DNA of 64,000 bases from Tubulanus polymorphus (GCF_964204645.1 NC_134032.1:14558275-14622274); one strand, 5' to 3'. Shown: positions 558-42,600, numbered from the stretch's first letter. Program-made: numbers and translations. The notes: generated by a model not told the origin, from the letters alone.

Positions 558-915
558 AGCCTAGCGCACATCGACACTGCGATTGGAGACAACTAGTTGC
601 TACCGAACGATTACCCCGCGCACATCGAAATCTAGTTACAACCGGTCAGTTGCAGCAACTGCATGACGCGTGTCGTTCGTCGAGATCCAGAGCGCGCACA
701 TCGACGGATATGACTGCGATTGAGTACAACCAGTTGCTCAAAAGTAGAACATGGGCAACTGGCTGGAACTGGAGATAGATCGACGCTTACCGATCGTAAG
801 CTCGCTCACATCGACACATTCGAGCAACTGATCGTATCCAGCCAGTTCCTCTCATGCGCCGAAAACTGTCTTGCAACTAGTTGTCTCCAATCGCAGTGTC
901 GATGTGCGCTAGGCT
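558..915. mobile_element. MITE family A (PIF/Harbinger-like), 358 bp
   Basis: ~43-bp TIR AGCCTAGCGCACATCGACACTGCGATTGGAGACAACTAGTTGC with TTA target duplication; further copies in the window. Confidence 0.85.
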
Positions 916-3108
916 TTAGTAGTAGGTCGTCACTGGACATACGTGAGACTGGACGACTGGGCGTGGAAGTACTCGTATCCACAGTATCAAGTGAACCTAT
1001 TTTGCGATCAAAGGTCAGAGGGGCAGACCGCATGACTAATCGGGGTCAATTCACATATTCACCACTTGTTTATAAATAAAACGCATTAATATTTCTATTG
1101 GTATAGACTATATTTATTTGTGTAATTGTCTCAATGAAATATATCTAACAAAACTGAATGCTAAAAACTAATACGGTATAGGAGCCTTTGTTTGCGACCT
1201 GTACGAGTTCTATTCTATATAGACCCCACGAGACCGGTCGATCGCGGTCCTGGAATAAACACACGACACCACCGCGCGAAGAGAAAAAATATTCGTTTAT
1301 TCACTTTCTGTCGCTACTCTATGCGTATATATGACTCGGGAGGCTCGTTACTAGTACAACCGAAATAACAAAAAGCTTTTTCTTTGCGTGTGACGCAGTG
1401 TCGTCGCAGGAAAGATGCGAATTCGCAGGATATAATGGACTCAATCAGTTTCAAATGGCGAAAACATGAAATAACTATGACGGTCACCATGTTTCATTTT
1501 TACGCAATTTGGTTAATTAAAAAGTTGATTCCATGTCGAATTCGGGGTGAAATTCAAATCACACTCGTGGATCTGGGCAAGTCTCGAAAGGCGTCGGACG
1601 TCAAACGTGCGTAAATCTATGAACTCTATCGGTCTGGCCTATAACAGTTATTAAAAAAGCCCGCAGTTATTGGTGGTTTTTACCACCCACTAAAAAGTGT
1701 TAATCGCACCGGTGCTGTTATACTGACACTGTTGGGAGCTGCTTAGAGGCGCATTGATACAATTACTAAACGAAATGTGAATTTCTTCTGGGATTCAATT
1801 TCGCGTATTATGAGAGATACTTGTAACAGTCGACTGGTCGTTCGTGCAGGACTCGAGAAATAGTTGGAACAATGACTGAGAGAGGAATGTTTAACTCTAC
1901 ATATGGAAATTAATGATCACAGACCTACTTATTAGACAAGTTTTTTATTCTAAATTCAAATGAAAGATTGCTGATTGTTGATTCGTTGTGTTTTGTTCGT
2001 TAGCGATGTTTGGCCTGTGAGAAACTGAGGTCCAAACCCGCGACATAGATGCGAATAAATTCTATTCGAATGTATTAATTAACGATTATCGGATCGACCG
2101 CTCTGACAGGGACCGCGCTCTGAACTCTCTTCGATATCGGAAAACGATATTTAAAAAAAAAAGAAACAGTCTGGAATTTTAATTTCGAAACCAATTTGAA
2201 TCTAATTCTCGATAGCCCGATCGAGTTAGATATATAGGCTACACCATGCGTGTGTTAGAATGCAATATAAGTGAATAAGTTGGTATCGGATATTCCATCA
2301 ACTCCGTGTTGGACTGTTCACACAAGGTTTGTATCCGGTTTTTATGAAATGATTATCAATTATTTTGAGATTTGGTTTTACCGATATAACATATAAAGAC
2401 CGCGGTGAATGTATTTCTTTGTGGTTTTGACGTTGAACGATTTCGTTGATATTTTCTGTCGCTAACACAAGCATCATTTTGTTATCGAAGGAAACGAAAT
2501 TCTTTCCTACGTTTCTATTCAGGGCTCCAAGTTTCACGTTTCAGATGAAAAATGATTCCTGGGTACATTTTGAAATACGTGTTATTACCATGGTTACTCA
2601 TTGTTACTATGTTGGTTGTCGACCAGGTTGAGGTTAGGGCTAACTTTGATATCCAGTCTATGAAACCAGGCCCAGGTTAAGAATTTAGGGGCCTACCCCT
2701 GGGGGGTAACTTTGATACCCCAGTCTATGTGACCCTGAAGATGCCTATTTTAGGACCTGAGATTAAACCCCCATTTTTATATTTCTTTTTTCGAAAACCA
2801 AAACCCGGTAAATCGCCTGGCACTATATATATATATTCTCAAAAATGTTTTGAAATATTTTTTTCTCACAAAAAATTCAGCGCCCATGCACAGCACAATC
2901 TCCGTGACCGGGAATATCTAAACATTCATCAATATCCGCGCGGGTTCTATTAGTATCGAATATGTATTATATACATTTGAATGGTATAATTATTTTCTGT
3001 CAAAAACAAGTTTACCCTTAAGCTGTCTGTCCATTCATTCAGTAGTTTGTCCCATTTTCTATTACAGCCGAATGCACCGTATTTCATTCAGTAATGATTT
3101 TTCACCTT

Positions 3109-21000: not shown

Positions 21001-24000
21001 GGTTAACGCACACGCACACATACAGAACATACCGTTACGATTTAGAGAACGAAAACAAAGCGTTGAAGAAAAAAAAAACAACTAAAATTTCATGCATTAT
21101 TTCAGTCCGAACGTAAAACCAGGTTTCAGTTTTCCGCAATTCATAAAACTGCGATAGCATCGTTTGTTACAACATGCGCGCTATCGTTACGAGACGTCCT
21201 TAAAATCCCGATCACCCTCAACCCCCGCCCTCCGAGCCACTGGGCTGCTGCTGCTGCTGCTGAACCGATTGACTTACGTAAAAGGGTTTACAGTTTTCGC
21301 GCACGTATCGACCGGCTGTGGTCGTAGCGTCCCAGTCTAGTCGGCCGTGCCAATAATAACCAGTTCTATAATATATTACAAACAGTATTACACAAAAACT
21401 TGATTCAACTGTATTACAGTAATACGTGATACGCAGGAGTGAGCGCGGCTTTAAACGGTAATACACACACATAGATAGCGAGCGTGGTTTTATAGAGACC
21501 TAGATCTATTCAATTCCACTGCATTAATGTGAGATCTTTTTCAAATTGTCAAACATCGTTTTAAGTCAATTTAAATTTGCTTAATTGCAACTGTTGAACC
21601 GGGCTCAGTTTTAATATCGTTATTCGAGGTTCAGTTGGTTCAGTTAAAACCTATCTATAAAACCGTGCCCCAGGGGGCGCTGCTAGTGCTGAAGGAGTGA
21701 TTAACTGACAGTACGCCTGTTATGCGGGTTGCGCGTTAGGAAGCCAGGACGGGACAGGGCGGGGCAAGCTGGGCCGGGGCAGGGCAGAGGTTCTGTTGTG
21801 TGGGTTGCCTGTTAAGGGAGCTGGACCGGGGTTCTGTTGTGTGGATGACGTGTTAGGGCCACGTTGGAGCGAGGGACATGCTAGGTTTTTATTTAGAGAT
21901 ACAAATGAAGCCTTCTTGTCGTCGACCTGTGAAGGAATAACATTCAAATTTTGTCGATTAGCAACAATATTGTTCTCTGATACAAAATTTCAGTTTCAAT
22001 CTCAGCCACCTGAACCACACGAATCGTAAACAGCCTGAAACATGAATTGTAATCAGCCTGAAACACAAATCATAATCAGCCTGAAACATGAATCGTAATC
22101 AGCCTGAAACATGAAACGTAATCAGCCTGAAACATGAAACGTAATCAGCCTGAAACATGAATCGTAATCAGCCTGAAACATGAATAGTAATCAGCAACCG
22201 TAATTAAGACTCGGGATGGACAGACAGACATTAAACTCATTTTCATTTACTATGATACGATATTTTGGTTTCAACAAATCAACAAATTAATTCACCAAAG
22301 ATTTCTCAATTTTAAAAATAACTTCTTTTTTTTGTCGAAATGCTTCTAATCTCGACGGGAAAACTTACTTGGATTTTTTTGCCATTCTGTAAGGAATCGA
22401 TCCTAATATTCGTTCCATCATTGCTAGGTGTTCTAAGTTATCGTGTGTCTGAAAATCAAAGAATATTCATTAACACGGTGGCGCCACTCACACTTTATCA
22501 GCTAAGAATCCAATCGATTAACGCAATGCAAGACATTGATGGAAACTGTCTGATTTTGCGCGATCTAACAATTTCAATAAATTCCCAGACCTCTGGGGCC
22601 GGTTCCATAGACAGGACTTAAGACCGGTCTAAGACAAACTTAGTTCTATAGCCAATCTAACAACTTAAGACAAGTCTTAAGGTTTAAGACCACTTTTGGT
22701 CTTAAGTCTCGACTATGGAACCAGCCCCTGGTGTTTTTTTCTTTAAAAAAATTCCCTGATTATTCCTAGACTTTTTTTTATAGCACAGAAAAATTCCCTG
22801 ACTTTTCTCTGATTCCCCCTGGTCAGTGACCGACCTTAATTAGTCACCGACGGTTGAGGTGAGGTACATGTATGAATCTGTGATACAACCTCGCTCACCG
22901 GACATTCTACACCGACTTATAGCATCACGAGACCCTGCCACATTCCTACCCTATTGGACCCAATTCCCTTTTGGAATAGTTTCAGTTGACAACGATGTAT
23001 TCGTGGTTGTGCAGAGGAGGGTAATTGCCACATACCTGGAATAGCGTGTAACCAGTGTATAATTCAAATATAATACAACCAATACTCCACGTATCACAAG
23101 GTTGACTCCAACCTAATTCTATAAAAGACAAACATACAAAAATAATGTTTACTTATATCAAAATTACTGGAACCAGGTTGATCAAGTATCTAACTGACGG
23201 TAGAAAATCCCTGCACACTAAGAATAAAAGAGTCTGAAATGTTTCCTTGAGCTAGTGTAGTTTATTCAACGTTTCGACTTTATCCTAATAGCCATCTTCA
23301 GGAATACTGTATTCCTTGAGCTAGTGTAGTTTATTCAACGTTTCGACTATATCCTAATAGTCATCTTCAGGAATACTGTATTCCTTGAGCTAGTGTAGTT
23401 TATTCAACGTTTCGACTATATCCTAATAGTCATCTTCAGGAATACTGTATTCCTTGAGCTAGTGTAGTTTATTCAACGTTTCGACTTTATCCTAATAGTC
23501 ATCTTCAGGAATACTGTATTCCTTGAGCTAGTGTAGTTTATTCAACGTTTCGACTATATCCTAATAGTCATCTTCAGGAATACTGTATTCCTTGAGCTAG
23601 TGTAGTTTATTCAACGTTTCGACTTTATCCTAATAGTCATCTTCAGGAATACTGTATTCCTTGAGCTAGTGTAGTTTATTCAACGTTTCAACTTTATCCT
23701 AATAGTCATCTTCAGGAATACTGTATTCCCTGACCTAGTGTAGTTTATTCAACGTTTCGACTTTATCCTAATAGTCATCTTCAGGAATACTGTATTCCTT
23801 GAGCTAGTGTAGTTTATTCAACGTTTCGACTTTATCCTAATAGTCATCTTCGGGAATACTGTATTCCTTGAGCTAGTGTAGTTTATTCAACGTTTCGACT
23901 TTATCCTAATAGTCATCTTCAGGAATACTGTATTCCTTGAGCTAGTGTAGTTTATTCAACGTTTCAACTTTATCCTAATAGTCATCTTCAGGAACACTGT

Positions 24001-27000
24001 ATTCCTTTTATTCAATTGATGCTGACATGAAGACATATATGTGTTATGTATGTCCAAAATCCAGAGAGAATGGCCATACCATAAAGAGAATGGCCGCACT
24101 GGACGTAAACAAACTCCTAAAACCTCAAAAGGGATAAAGACTGATTTTTCATCGAATGTTTTACGCGGCCACGGCTGATAACTACTGACCTAATATCACT
24201 TCAGGCGCTCTGTAGTGTCGTGTAGATACGATCGTGCTGTGATGTTCGTGGTCGAACGTCGCCGATCCGAAATCAATCAGTCGTATATCGGTATTCTTCA
24301 CAAAACGAACGTCTTTTTTCTACAGTGAGAAAATATCAACAACAGGCGTTTATGAAGTTTTAAAAAGATGACTTGTCAATTTTTTTTCTCGAAACTCTCG
24401 CACGACCGAAGTCACAAACCTTTTTACTGTTGTAAACCGTGTCATAATCGGAATCGACGAATAAGATATTTTCAGGTTTCAAATCCGTGTGGGTCAATTT
24501 CAGACGATGCAAAACTGTAGAAAAAAAAATAAATTCATAAATCGATGAGTCAAATATTTAAGCCTGATTCGTTACGAGTGCCGCCATCTATTGGCGTACG
24601 GATGACTTACATCTAACGCTATAACACAGTTGATACGCTATATGTCGAACTTGATGCAGTTTATACGGATAATAATTATTATCTTTCTGTAAACGAGAAA
24701 AAATATGAGAATATTAGTAAAAAAACATTCACAAGTTCATCGGCGGCTTCCAAAAAAATGCCAAAGTTTCAGGGTTAACTTGAATCTAGAATCAAAGCAG
24801 CGATAACGGGTTTTCTGCGTTGATGACCGTACAAAGTTTCATCGAAATCAGTCATTATCAGTTCAACCAAAACGGTATTTTTTGGTAGGAGCGCCACCTA
24901 GGGGTCAACACCTGTATTATACATTTGGTTCAAAGAGTACAAACCAGATTTGAGGACAACGGAGAAAACTATACGAACAATGCCACAATTCAGGGTTGAA
25001 TTGGAATAGGTTCATTTTGCATTCGTTTCTAAATCGTGGGTCATATTTAAAACTCTGCATTGACTGTGGGACTGGATTCTGTTTGCTTTCCAACGATAGC
25101 GTCAATGACCTATCTCATTTAAAGACTTTAAAGGACTCTTTTTTACTCCCAATTAATCGTATAAACTTACCAGAAAATCAAACACGCTTAAACCCAACAT
25201 GTCAAACGCGAGGCACATGTGACCGTGATAGTCAAACCAGTCCATCATATGTACACAGAGACTGCAGAAAAAAAAACAAGAAATATTTACAATCTAAAAT
25301 ACTGAAAACAATTGGAAATCAATTTGTAACTAAATTCTGCTGTTCTAAAAAGCGTTTAAAGTTTGCTCTGCTAAAATATCTGACAAAGAACGATTTCTCT
25401 ATTCAACTTTTCCCTCCTCTCCCTTCCCCTGGGGGGTGCCAACCTCTGACAACAGCTATCAATAACGAATAGAATCTTTCTTCAGTATAAACATTTCATA
25501 TAAAATATGAAAGAAAATGTTCGAATCAAGCGATCAACAGTGAGACCCTTCACGAATATCAAAACAAATCGAATCAGTATTTCTCATAATGAAATACCGA
25601 TATTGGCAGCTCTGTTTCTCCTCGTCGTCCCGAAACCTTTCGAATAAACTCACTTCTTTCCTTCGGGATCTTTATCTTGTAGTTTTTCCAGCACGTTGAT
25701 CTCGAGTTTCGCAGCTTCGCGATACTTCGTCACATTCTTTATCACCTTCAACGCGACATCCATTCCATTTCTGTTTAACGAAGAAAAAAAAACATGACAA
25801 CTGAAATATCTAAATGAACCTGTGCAGTGGCTGCGTGAAGGTCTCAAGGTATGATCTGCTGTACTACAGCTTGGCAACACTATGAATTTTCCATGTTACA
25901 GGGTTCTTTTTTTTTATAGATTAGGGATCGAAATTCCTTAAAATTATATATTTCCCCCGACACTTGGACAGATTCCTTGATAAGATATCATCATTGGCAG
26001 CTGTTTCTTATCAAGAGGTTCCTTGTGCCACTGGTCACCAGTCAGAACAACAAGACACCAAAAACACATATTCCCTGATAAGATTATAAGATATCCGCAG
26101 TGCGAACTGATTCTTCTGGTTTATCAAAGAATCATTGATCGTCTTCATATTCCAAACCTCTCATGAATAAATGGTTTCCCATAGTAAACAAGCAGATCAC
26201 ATGCTACTCATATCCAAGTCTCTGATTCGCCAGAGCTGGTCACCTGGTATGCAAATTACCCACATGGTCACTAGCCCTGGCCCCTGATTGGCCAGAGCTA
26301 GTCACATGATGTGCAAATTACCCCAAGGTCACTAACCCTAGCCCCTGATTGGTCAGTGCTGGTCACATGGTATGCAAATTACCAACATGGTCAATAAACC
26401 TAGACCCTGATTGGTCAGTGCTGGTCACCTGGTATGCAAATTACCCACATGGTCACTAACCCTGGCCCCTGATTGGCCAGAGCTGGTCACATGGTGTGCA
26501 AATTACCCCAAGGTCACTTACCCTAGCCCCTGATTGGTCAGTGCTGGTCACATGGTATGCAAATTACCCACATGGTCAATAAACCTAGACCCTGATTGGT
26601 CAGTGCTGGTCACTTGGTATGCAAATTACCTACATGGTCACTAACCCTGGCCCCTGATTGGCCAGAGCTGGTCACATGGTGTGCAAATGACCCCAAGGGA
26701 TTAACCCTAGCCCCTGATTGGTCAGTGCTGGTCACATGGTATGCAAATTAACCACATGGTCACTAACCATAGACCCTGATTGGTCAGTGCTGGTCACATG
26801 GTGTGCAAATTACCCACATGGTCACTAACCATAGACCCTGATTGGTCAGTGCTGGTCACATGGTATAAACAAATAGACCAACCTTGTAGCATGACCAAAT
26901 GTGTCAACATGAATTGACTTGGATTTTTATTGGATTGTTTTTTTTTGTAAAGTTAGATTGATTCTTGTTTGAATAAATTCTTAAAACTTAAAATTTATGG

Positions 27001-39600: not shown

Positions 39601-42600
39601 ATCTACGCACACTCTGATTGGTCAACACCTCATTCACAGCATACCCATACATGCAAAATACATCCAGTACTCCTGATTCACAACTACTAGCACCACCTAT
39701 CACTCATACACCAAACTAAGGCTTGTAAACATTCTTCATCAAATATATCGTTATTTTTTCAAATACAATAAAATAATAATTCAAATTCAGATTGACGTCA
39801 AACACCGACGACAGACGAACCGGCCAGCCGAGAGATTGCACAAAACAGAATTCACGCAAATCACGCTAAAATATCGTAGTAGGTAAATCAGAAAATTCAA
39901 ATTTCCGTTTTAAGCATCTTAAAACTGGAACTTCATCTATTCGCTGATTCGTTCGTTTGTTACGTTAGACTTACCGACTAAACCCCATCGATCGAAACTT
40001 TTTAAAAAGAAATTACTAAATTCCTAATCAATCTTTTAAATATTTTTTCGAATTTCTTTTTTCTAATTTCTCTCTAGGGAAAGAATTTTAAAAACCGTGG
40101 ATCATCGATATTGGACTTACCGAACTTATAGAATGTGTAAACGAGGAGGAGCCTACTTGATGTACGGCGCTGTCCGACCTCCGTCTGCCGTACGAGTGTC
40201 GATTACGACGTCTCCACCTTGACCTTGAACTCGTCGTCGACGGCGTCTGCTGTTCGACGTTGTTGTTGTTTTTTGACGACGATCGTCGGTCCACGCCACC
40301 GCGGTCCCTACGCCTCGACGACGATCGTCGGTCCCCGCCGCGGTCCTTACGTCTCGACGAATAACTGCTTTTGAAACTGGAACTGCGACGATGTCGGCCG
40401 CGCTCGCTGAAACAACGGAGAAAAATTAAATTAGGATTACCAGACTACGTTAGGATTTCTCAGGGTGGATATAGACAGGGTGGATCTAGGGTGCTATTAG
40501 GCAGGGTGGATCTAGACAGGGTGGATCTATGGTGCTATTAGACAGGGTGGATCTATGGTGCTATTAGACAGGGTGGATCTAGACAGGGTGGACCTATGGT
40601 GCTATTAGACAGGGTGGATCTAGACAGGGTGGATCTATGGTGCTATTAGACAGGGTGGATCTAGACAGGGTGGATCTATGGTGCTATTAGACAGGGTGGA
40701 TCTATGGTGCTATTAGACAGGGTGGATATAGGGTGCTATTAGACAGGGTGGATCTATGGTGCTATTAGACAGGGTGGATATAGACAGGGTGGATCTATGG
40801 TGCTATTAGACAGGGTGGATCTAGACAGGGTGGATCTATGGTGCTATTAGACAGGGTGGATCTAGACAGGGTGGATCTATGGTGCTATTAGACAGGGTGG
40901 ATCTAGGGTGCTATTAGACAGGGTGGATCTATGGTGCTATTAGACAGGGTGGATATAGACAGGGTGGATCTATGGTGCTATTAGACAGGGTGGATCTAGA
41001 CAGGGTGGATCTATGGTGCTATTAGACAGGGTGGATATAGACAGGGTGGATCTATGGTGCTATTAGACAGGGTGGATCTAGGGTGCTATTAGACAGGGTG
41101 GATATAGACAGGGTGGATCTATGGTGCTATTAGACAGGGTGGATCTAGACAGGGTGGATCTTTGGTGCTATTAGACAGGGTGGATCTAGACAGGGTGGAT
41201 CTATGGTGCTATTAGACAGGGTGGATATAGACAGGGTGGATCTATGGTGCTATTAGACAGGGTGGATCTAGACAGGGTGGATCTATGGTGCTATTAGACA
41301 GGGTGGATCTAGACAGGGTGGATCTATGGTGCTATTAGACAGGGTGGATCTAGACAGGGTGGATCTATGGTGCTATTAGACAGGGTGGATCTAGACAGGG
41401 TGGATCTATGGTGCTATTAGACAGGGTGGATCTAGACAGGGTGGATCTATGGTGCTATTAGACAGGGTGGATATAGACAGGGTGGATCTATGGTGCTATT
41501 AGACAGGGTGGATATAGACAGGGTGGATCTATGGTGCTATTAGACAGGGTGGATCTAGACAGGGTGGATCTATGGTGCTATTAGACAGGGTGGATCTAGA
41601 CAGGGTGGATCTATGGTGCTATAAGACAGGGTGGATCTAGACAGGGTGGATCTATGGTGCTATTAGACAGGGTGGATCTAGACAGGGTGGATCTATGGTG
41701 CTATTAGACAGGGTGGATCTAGATAGGGTGGATCTAGGGTGCTTTGCACCATGGAGATAAATTTTTTTGAGGAATACTAAATGAACAAAAAATTCAGTTT
41801 ATTTCCAAACAAAATTTACCAACGCATTTCTTTGAAAGACTCGAATGATTAATTAGACTTATAATCATTACCTTAGATTAATAAGACATATTTTATTTTG
41901 AAAATCATCGTACGCCGAGACTAATTTTCCAACAAGCATTCGAGCGGGTGGCTGATCGCATGCGCGATCATTTGAAGGCTTAATGACTATGCGTTTAATC
42001 AAATCCTCCAAAAGTTGAAATATGAATGACATACGGTGACAAAATCAAAATTTTTCATCATTTTCAAAGGTATGCTGATCAGCACGTTGAAATAATTGAT
42101 ACACGGATAAATCTTTAGAAGATAAAATCCCACTATTTACAGATTAAAAGAATTTAAAAACCAGAATTCATTTATTAAATCTAAAATATTTAAAAGACAC
42201 GACGTTTCGATCTCACCCTAGAGATCATCGTCAGGTGTGAGATATAGATTAAAAACAGGGGTATATATACAGAGGAGGACAGGTTAATTGAGTAAATTGG
42301 TGAGTGAGTAAATAATTAGTGTTTGGCAAGGCATGAAGTAATATACTTAGAAAGAAGGGAATTATGCGGAGAAAAGCCATTATTTAAATTGGTACTAATA
42401 TCTGAGTGACGAGTAATTAGGGCAGACTCAACTATGTGGCGTTTAGTGTAATTGCTTCCACTAATTATTTACTCACTCACCAATTTACTCAATTAACCTG
42501 TCCTCCTCTGTATATATACCCCTGTTTTAAGTCTATTTCTCACACCTGATCTCTAGGGTGAGATCGAAACGTCGTGTCTTTTAAATATTTTAGATTTAAT

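Follow-up and report, generated by a model that had tools for sequence, protein, structure and literature searches.

A 69-bp tandem repeat with Penelope-type minimal hammerhead motifs in a CLK intron of Tubulanus polymorphus, probably derived from a Penelope-like element

Results

The stretch of Tubulanus polymorphus DNA analysed here (GCF_964204645.1 NC_134032.1:14558275-14622274; 64,000 nucleotides, referred to as the window) carries on its minus strand a CLK/LAMMER kinase gene, one kinase-domain intron of which contains a tandem array of eleven 69-bp units, each with a putative minimal hammerhead ribozyme. The two coding stretches that flank the intron were searched against the PDB separately. 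For positions 24301-24185 (minus strand) the best matches were CLK4, CLK2, CLK3 and CLK1 (E ~3e-17), and for 23119-23033 (minus strand) they were CLK2, CLK3 and CLK1 (E ~1e-12). The exons follow one another directly within the kinase domain (..RAPEVIL / ELGWSQPCD..) and the phase-1 junction restores a Glu codon. Since they align to consecutive CLK2 residues, the intron runs from 24189 to 23119 and the array lies in the sense orientation within a minus-strand gene. The insertion accounts for ~812 nt of the intron (23204-24015), while the final 85 nt, including the polypyrimidine tract, are unaffected by it; the distance from the end of the array to the 3′ splice site is 124 nt. The coordinates of the features are listed in Table 1.

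At 23243-24007 Tandem Repeats Finder reported an indel-free repeat of period 69 with 11.1 copies and 97% matches, and the units run head to tail from 24001 down to 23243. On the transcript strand the unit reads UACAG-UAUUC-CUGAAGA-U-GACUA-UUAGGAUA-(A/U)AGUC-GAAA-CG-UU-GAAUA, followed by a 20-nt spacer that holds AAUAAA, a hexamer found in all eleven units. A 21-nt core string from the unit has 11 occurrences in the window, compared with an expectation of 0.00 in shuffled sequence. Both CUGAAGA and GAAA are kept in ten of the units; the remaining one, unit 3, has CCGAAGA and, by the hammerhead consensus, should be inactive. An original prediction, made from the sequence alone, had described eleven sense-oriented 69-bp units in a kinase-domain intron of CLK, with this same parse, an AAUAAA in each unit, ten intact cores, an altered ninth copy and about 125 nt between the array and the 3′ splice site; the repeat finder, the unit read-out and the PDB matches agree with it throughout. 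Relative to the consensus, unit 1 carries changes in helix I (A>G) and helix II (C>U), unit 4 has two changes, both in the spacer, and units 5 and 11 each have one change in helix II (C>U and A>G, respectively). Unit position 32 is A in eight units and U in units 7, 9 and 10, and the two variants are interspersed along the array.

The array is bounded on the 5′ side by a degenerate partial unit, which is the ragged, 5′-truncated start of the insertion, and on the 3′ side by a 39-nt tail common to the element family. DNA contigs from two other samples, X1 and X2, join the unique 3′ flank to the tail and the array (22950/22952-23255); in X1 the junction of the array with the 5′ flank is likewise spanned by contigs (23996-24350). 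The depth of these junction contigs is equal to that of the flanks and they carry single-nucleotide polymorphisms relative to the reference. The assembled haplotype is therefore not the only one with the insertion, and among the joints listed for the sample DNA none was of an empty site. As for the possibility, raised in the original prediction, that the array is missing from most conspecific haplotypes, its junction was thus present in both of the other samples.

Table 1 Features of the CLK locus and of the array (window coordinates).
Feature	Position	Strand	Details
Upstream CLK exon stretch	24190..24301	-	matches CLK2 6fyk_A residues 186-221
Host intron	23119..24189	-	GT..AG, phase 1, 1071 nt; GT 24189-24188, AG 23120-23119
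Degenerate partial unit	24002..24015	-	14 nt (TTGAATAAA-AGGAA), internal deletion
Eleven tandem 69-bp units	23243..24001	-	each a 44-nt minimal type-I hammerhead motif and a 25-nt spacer with AAUAAA
Core of unit 3	23833..23853	-	U4>C, CCGAAGA; third in transcript order, ninth on the + strand
Predicted cleavage sites	23958/23957, then each 69 nt to 23268/23267	-	after GUU, unit positions 44/45
Element-family 3′ tail	23204..23242	-	39 nt (ACATTTCAGACTC...GTGTGCAGGGATTTT)
Downstream CLK exon	23036..23118	-	matches CLK2 6fyk_A residues 222-249

The unit has the parts of a type-I hammerhead. The core (C3-U4-G5-A6-N7-G8-A9 and G12-A13-A14) is flanked by a 5-bp helix I (UAUUC/GAAUA) and by helix II (GACUAU/AUAGUC), which has 6 bp in the units with T32 and one A-A mismatch in those with A32, and a bulged U sits 5′ of helix II. 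In place of helix III there is an ACGU palindrome within GAAA-CG-UU, with an A15.1-U16.1 pair and U as the non-G nucleotide H17; other families have ACGU+C or AUAU+U at the helix III/cleavage site. The two-nucleotide loop is unable to close, so helix III would form only between two units, as a double hammerhead.

Searching the genome with the unit, as the original prediction had proposed, showed that the repeat is widely dispersed. A three-unit query gave at least 227 matches of 95-100% identity on eight contigs (C2, C3, C5, C6, C8, C9, C10 and C60) of the 268-Mb assembly, and array sizes at the retrieved loci range from 6 units to over 34. Measured by k-mer depth in public DNA runs, the array exceeds its flanks by orders of magnitude. 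The descriptor CTGAWGA-N14-30-GAAACGTT had 2,804 matches in the genome, compared with 13 for the reversed pattern. Seventeen distinct arrays were oriented on the hammerhead strand: the 5′ start falls at a different unit position in every one, while 13 of them terminate in a common tail (ACATTTCAGACTC..TTAGTGTGCAGGGATTTT, or a close variant). A partial inverted copy is found just upstream in several arrays; inverted partial copies are typical of insertions of Penelope-like elements (PLEs). The CLK array has the same plan, with its degenerate partial unit, eleven units and 39-nt tail.

The unit end and the tail are also found within a second satellite, with a 167-bp unit (97% identity over 62 nt), which consists of the hammerhead, the tail and ~55 nt more. 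Taking 98 nt out of the 167-bp unit yields the 69-bp unit, with GGAA|TACAG as the junction; repeats of a mixed 236-bp (167+69) type are also present. The sample of 251 full copies comprises 32 arrays on seven contigs, with 1-31 full units each, and the 98-nt deletion junction is common to all 32. The 69-bp form therefore arose once and was then dispersed. Along contigs C2, C3, C6, C8, C9 and C10, the arrays of both satellites are concentrated near the contig ends (for example, 0.2-3.7 and 14.5-16.2 Mb on C8, and 0.2-1.9 and 21.7-23 Mb on C6), and the PLE copies that bear an open reading frame (ORF) are mostly mid-contig.

A GIY-YIG profile search of the genome gave at least 150 matches, many of them in open frames of 817-841 codons, and the 3-kb loci around these matches were compared with the array. 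In four of them (L064, L065, L066 and L071) a hammerhead motif lies ~320 nt past the ORF stop, on the matching strand, with 95% identity to that of the array over 41-54 nt and a U at position 32. The tail that follows is homologous to the satellite tail (83-85% over ~85-100 nt). The ORF contains RVT_1 (E 4.8e-10) and GIY-YIG (E 1.5e-6) domains, and its nearest named relatives are the PLE-type reverse transcriptases of the decapod and stomatopod crustaceans Penaeus japonicus, Procambarus, Cherax and Oratosquilla (~40% identity). The four PLE copies diverge from one another just beyond the position aligned with the end of the tail in the window, which thus lies at a site homologous to the 3′ terminus of an autonomous PLE, and one copy continues into a 'head' that the 167-bp satellite also carries. 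The homologies of tail and head therefore give a chain from the autonomous PLE to the 167-bp head-plus-tail repeat and from there to the 69-bp repeat. One of the four copies, L065, has a 21-nt internal duplication in its hammerhead (~900-960, minus strand; ..GACTATTAGGATATAGTCGAAACGT ATTAGGATATAGTCGAAACGTTG..), a small-scale case of tandem duplication inside the motif.

Covariation was assessed in an ungapped alignment of the 44-nt motif as found in both satellites (69-bp and 167-bp) and in four element families, namely PLE family A, PLE family B (L070), a solitary tail at 42196-42239 (minus strand) and L072; the members aligned were window 23332-23375, window 42196-42239, L052, L064, L070 and L072. 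Across the four families, 8 of the 11 helix pairs are altered on both sides. Paired cells amount to 90.8%, compared with 30-45% when the partners are slid, and none of 500 shuffles reached the observed values. The core, G10.1, U16.1 and the first three bases of loop II (UAG) are invariant, and further compensated variants of helix II, such as GGCUGU/ACAGCC, are found among the descriptor matches. The covariation signal is clear, though it comes from only four independent lineages. Judged by this alignment and by the architecture, which matches that published for PLEs (PMC4209133), the units are genuine Penelope-type minimal type-I hammerhead motifs, the kind named in the original prediction.

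Loop II begins with UAG in all four families although the sequence of helix II varies, which suggests a tertiary contact or a protein-recognition site. The solitary tail, of a different Penelope-type family, occupies 42100-42240 (minus strand) and reads CACAC-CUGACGA-U-GAUCUC-UAGGGU-GAGAUC-GAAA-CG-UC-GUGUC, then AAUAAA, with the end ..GTGGGATTTTAT. Its helices I and II are wholly unlike those of the 69-bp unit, yet are paired.

Conservation within the 69-bp family was examined in 200-250 full-length copies from the 32 arrays, selected on the full unit in three rotations. Mismatch is ~1% alike in core, helices, loop and spacer (core 0.010-0.012, spacer 0.008). The original prediction had described most changes within the ribozyme as G-U tolerant; this holds for the four stem changes of the CLK array and fails for the family, where the stem changes of the 251 copies comprise 44 that are disrupting, 23 that are wobble-compatible and none that is compensatory. 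In addition, ~40-48% of family units have A32, which breaks a helix II pair that is kept by the parent element. With units that are 97% alike, the array copies appear to be young and to be drifting neutrally.

Two adjacent 69-nt units were folded using a nearest-neighbour model. The minimum free energy (MFE) ranges from -29.8 to -33.4 kcal/mol, while the bare double-hammerhead fold scores -4.3 kcal/mol. The ensemble with the double hammerhead is ~18 kcal/mol above the free ensemble, with a predicted equilibrium fraction of ~1e-13; neither tertiary contacts nor Mg2+ nor co-transcriptional folding enter the model, and these energies are therefore indicative only. The competitor is an 8-bp helix (GUAUUCCU/AGGAAUAC) made by the 69-mer junction, which buries helix I and C3-U4 and is predicted to close each unit on itself. 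Each junction (e.g. 23385-23369, minus strand) forms AGGAATAC-A-GTATTCCT, a perfectly palindromic sequence that the 167-bp parent repeat lacks and that is predicted to mask the ribozyme. The low predicted share of the active fold agrees with what has been seen in other minimal hammerheads: those of PLEs self-cleave poorly in vitro (PMC4209133), and for an active PLE no reads with ends at the hammerhead cut site were found.

Discussion

The array is probably a 5′-truncated, non-autonomous tandem derivative of a PLE, that is, a very short satellite of the type termed non-long-terminal-repeat (non-LTR) retrozymes. With its PLE-type minimal hammerhead it joins an already described class of elements, and of the proposals in the original prediction, a neutral satellite derived from a PLE end is the one favoured by the PLE 3′-end homology, the array ends and the dispersal. 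The 69-bp unit would represent the hammerhead-bearing part of the PLE 3′ end, formed when a 167-bp repeat of hammerhead, 3′ tail and 5′ element head lost 98 nt. Multimers would then have spread, most likely by means of the PLE reverse transcriptase/GIY-YIG endonuclease via target-primed reverse transcription, a process expected to fix the 3′ tail and to leave the 5′ ends ragged. The fixed 3′ end, ragged 5′ ends and inverted partial copies fit PLE-type target-primed reverse transcription of multimeric RNA as described in PMC4209133 and PMC11167929. One such event would have landed, in the sense orientation, in a CLK intron of formerly ~250 nt. The hammerhead fold is maintained in the parent element lineages; the array copies appear to drift. 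Most likely the insertion is carried along passively and removed with the intron during splicing, and its position in CLK looks incidental. Any self-cleavage would involve two units paired via the ACGU palindrome and is expected to be inefficient.

Several points weigh against this reading. The evidence for transposition as multimers is the pattern of the array ends, later unequal crossing-over could have contributed to the number of copies in a given array, and no clean target-site duplication was seen by eye at the CLK insertion. The simplifications of the energy model, given above, also count here. Finally, a search of 22500-24800 against Rfam gave no hammerhead family up to E=10, the only matches in the region being weak miRNA- or snoRNA-like ones elsewhere in it. 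This negative is weak counter-evidence because the Rfam models are not built on minimal variants of helix III; forms that lack helix III would be expected to escape these models, but the result still counts against membership.

Much of this evidence also bears on whether the motif is a hammerhead at all. The Rfam result, and the inverted copies at one end of some arrays, which resemble those of miniature inverted-repeat transposable elements (MITEs), would suit a coincidental occurrence of the boxes in an AT-rich satellite of a DNA transposon of the MITE or Helitron type. That explanation is close to refuted, given that both helices are compensated across four families around an invariant core, that the descriptor excess over the control is ~200-fold, that the motif occurs in the 3′ end of elements with reverse transcriptase and GIY-YIG domains, as published for PLEs, and that inverted partial copies are themselves usual in PLE insertions. 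A MITE was also rejected at the CLK locus itself, where no inverted repeat of 14 nt or more was found around the array. It is more conceivable, but still quite unlikely, that a single PLE tail was inserted and that the eleven copies grew in place by slippage or unequal crossing-over, without a multimeric RNA. In-place expansion of satellites is common, and both the range of array sizes and the interspersed A32 and T32 variants of the CLK array are in keeping with it. Against it, the same GGAA/TACAG junction is present in all 32 arrays, on seven contigs, for which independent origins are implausible, so that at least a junction-spanning dimer must have moved; and a tail that stays constant while the 5′ phase varies indicates that copying began at the 3′ end.

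Alternatively, array transcripts might self-cleave as double hammerheads to give 69-nt linear or circular RNAs that template PLE-mediated spread, which would make the unit the smallest functioning retrozyme. Most units retain an intact motif, with helices kept by covariation in the parent lineages; the deletion junction common to all arrays indicates that the unit spread after forming; each unit is predicted to be a closed, self-paired domain, like retrozyme RNAs; and axolotl retrozymes have dimer-dependent type-I hammerheads. We nevertheless consider this unlikely. The double-hammerhead fold is predicted to be a vanishing fraction of the ensemble, with helix I and C3-U4 hidden by the 8-bp junction helix, a helix II pair is broken by A32 in nearly half of the units, minimal hammerheads of PLEs cleave poorly in vitro, no cut-site read ends were found for an active PLE, and ragged 5′ ends with a fixed tail suit linear multimer templates better than circles. 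The ultra-minimal retrozyme of the original prediction, if taken as a new class, is disfavoured by the same energies, and consensus lengths of 51-972 bp had already been listed for such elements. Very unlikely is the fuller version, in which double hammerheads formed co-transcriptionally beat the 8-bp helix and cut after GUU, the 69-nt RNAs circularise and feed PLE spread, and cleavage competes with splicing and lowers CLK output.

Less probable again is that the sense array was co-opted as a timer, which would cut the CLK pre-mRNA in competition with splicing or cause early polyadenylation via its eleven AAUAAA hexamers. Its sense orientation within a kinase-domain intron, the ten intact cores of eleven, the presence of the insertion at flank depth in two more samples and the conserved intronic hammerheads of amniotes, for which a role in mRNA biogenesis has been proposed, could all be read in this way. 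However, the insertion is young, one of dozens that are near-identical, and has no locus-specific features; the core is no more conserved than the spacer, both mutating at ~1%, and across the family there is no preference for changes that keep pairs. The active fold is also energetically disfavoured, and intronic retrozyme copies are common elsewhere, introns overlapping 44% of the copies in Xenopus (10.64898/2026.07.22.740005). The timer suggested in the original prediction is thus highly improbable, and the array is best regarded as a PLE-derived satellite.

The closest known counterparts are the minimal hammerheads of PLEs (Cervera & de la Pena 2014, PMC4209133). These share the type-I topology, the conserved core, a helix I of 4-5 bp that lacks a defined loop 1, the unpaired nucleotide 5′ of helix II and a very small, palindromic helix III, implying that they act as dimers; they lie in the terminal repeats (pseudo-LTRs) of elements with reverse transcriptase and GIY-YIG domains, and also show frequent close inverted pairs and massive copy number. 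They differ in that they sit once per ~3-kb element, whereas here the motif alone is amplified as a 69-bp head-to-tail array, with a helix II of 6 bp and an invariant UAG at the start of the loop. The unit's core string had no occurrence that we could find in the literature.

Metazoan non-LTR retrozymes (Cervera & de la Pena 2020, PMC7229834; Li, Clavereau & Pollet 2026, 10.64898/2026.07.22.740005) are likewise tandem, AT-rich, non-coding repeats with one type-I hammerhead each, in dispersed arrays of dimers to tens of units with many intronic copies, and they co-occur with and are homologous in sequence to PLE terminal repeats, from which the preprint of 2026 derives them. The demonstrated retrozyme RNAs are ~170-400 nt long and have canonical type-I hammerheads with loop-loop contacts (PMC7229834), in contrast to the 69-nt unit, which has a PLE-type minimal hammerhead. 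Its length is below that of the demonstrated RNAs and inside the range of 51-972 bp reported bioinformatically for non-LTR retrozyme consensus sequences (10.64898/2026.07.22.740005), while the 167-bp sister satellite fits the classical retrozyme size.

Newt satellite 2 and the axolotl and Schistosoma Sm-alpha satellites are similar in having tandem units of which two are needed for an extended helix III (double hammerhead). Their units are ~330 bp, with a 1-2 bp helix III that has its own loop, and transcripts and cleavage are documented for them. The amniote intronic hammerheads HH9 and HH10 (de la Pena & Garcia-Robles 2010, cited in PMC7229834) also lie in the sense orientation in an intron of a protein-coding gene. 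They are single, full-size and ultraconserved at orthologous sites, unlike the young multicopy insertion in CLK, which has no sign of site-specific conservation.

Three forms are thus present in one genome: the autonomous PLE, the 167-bp 'head plus tail' repeat and the 69-bp repeat, which consists of hardly more than the ribozyme. The path that connects them supports the recent proposal that, among animals, retrozymes represent non-autonomous elements derived from PLEs, and the 69-bp unit provides a very small substrate for asking if the minimal hammerheads of PLEs act as dimers when cleaving in vivo. Annotators should mask the whole family as a PLE-derived satellite and not flag its loci one at a time.

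Other features of the window

Further repeats are found near the array. Downstream of the next CLK exon, 22017-22195 holds a 23-bp tandem repeat (7.8 copies, 91% alike), and 22593-22730 (minus strand) forms a near-perfect, MITE-like long hairpin of ~138 nt with weak matches to plant miRNA families (MIR4378, 26 bits against a cut-off of 90). A block of ~185 bp is repeated at 26311-26917 (plus strand), where it is visible as a series of similar short ORFs.

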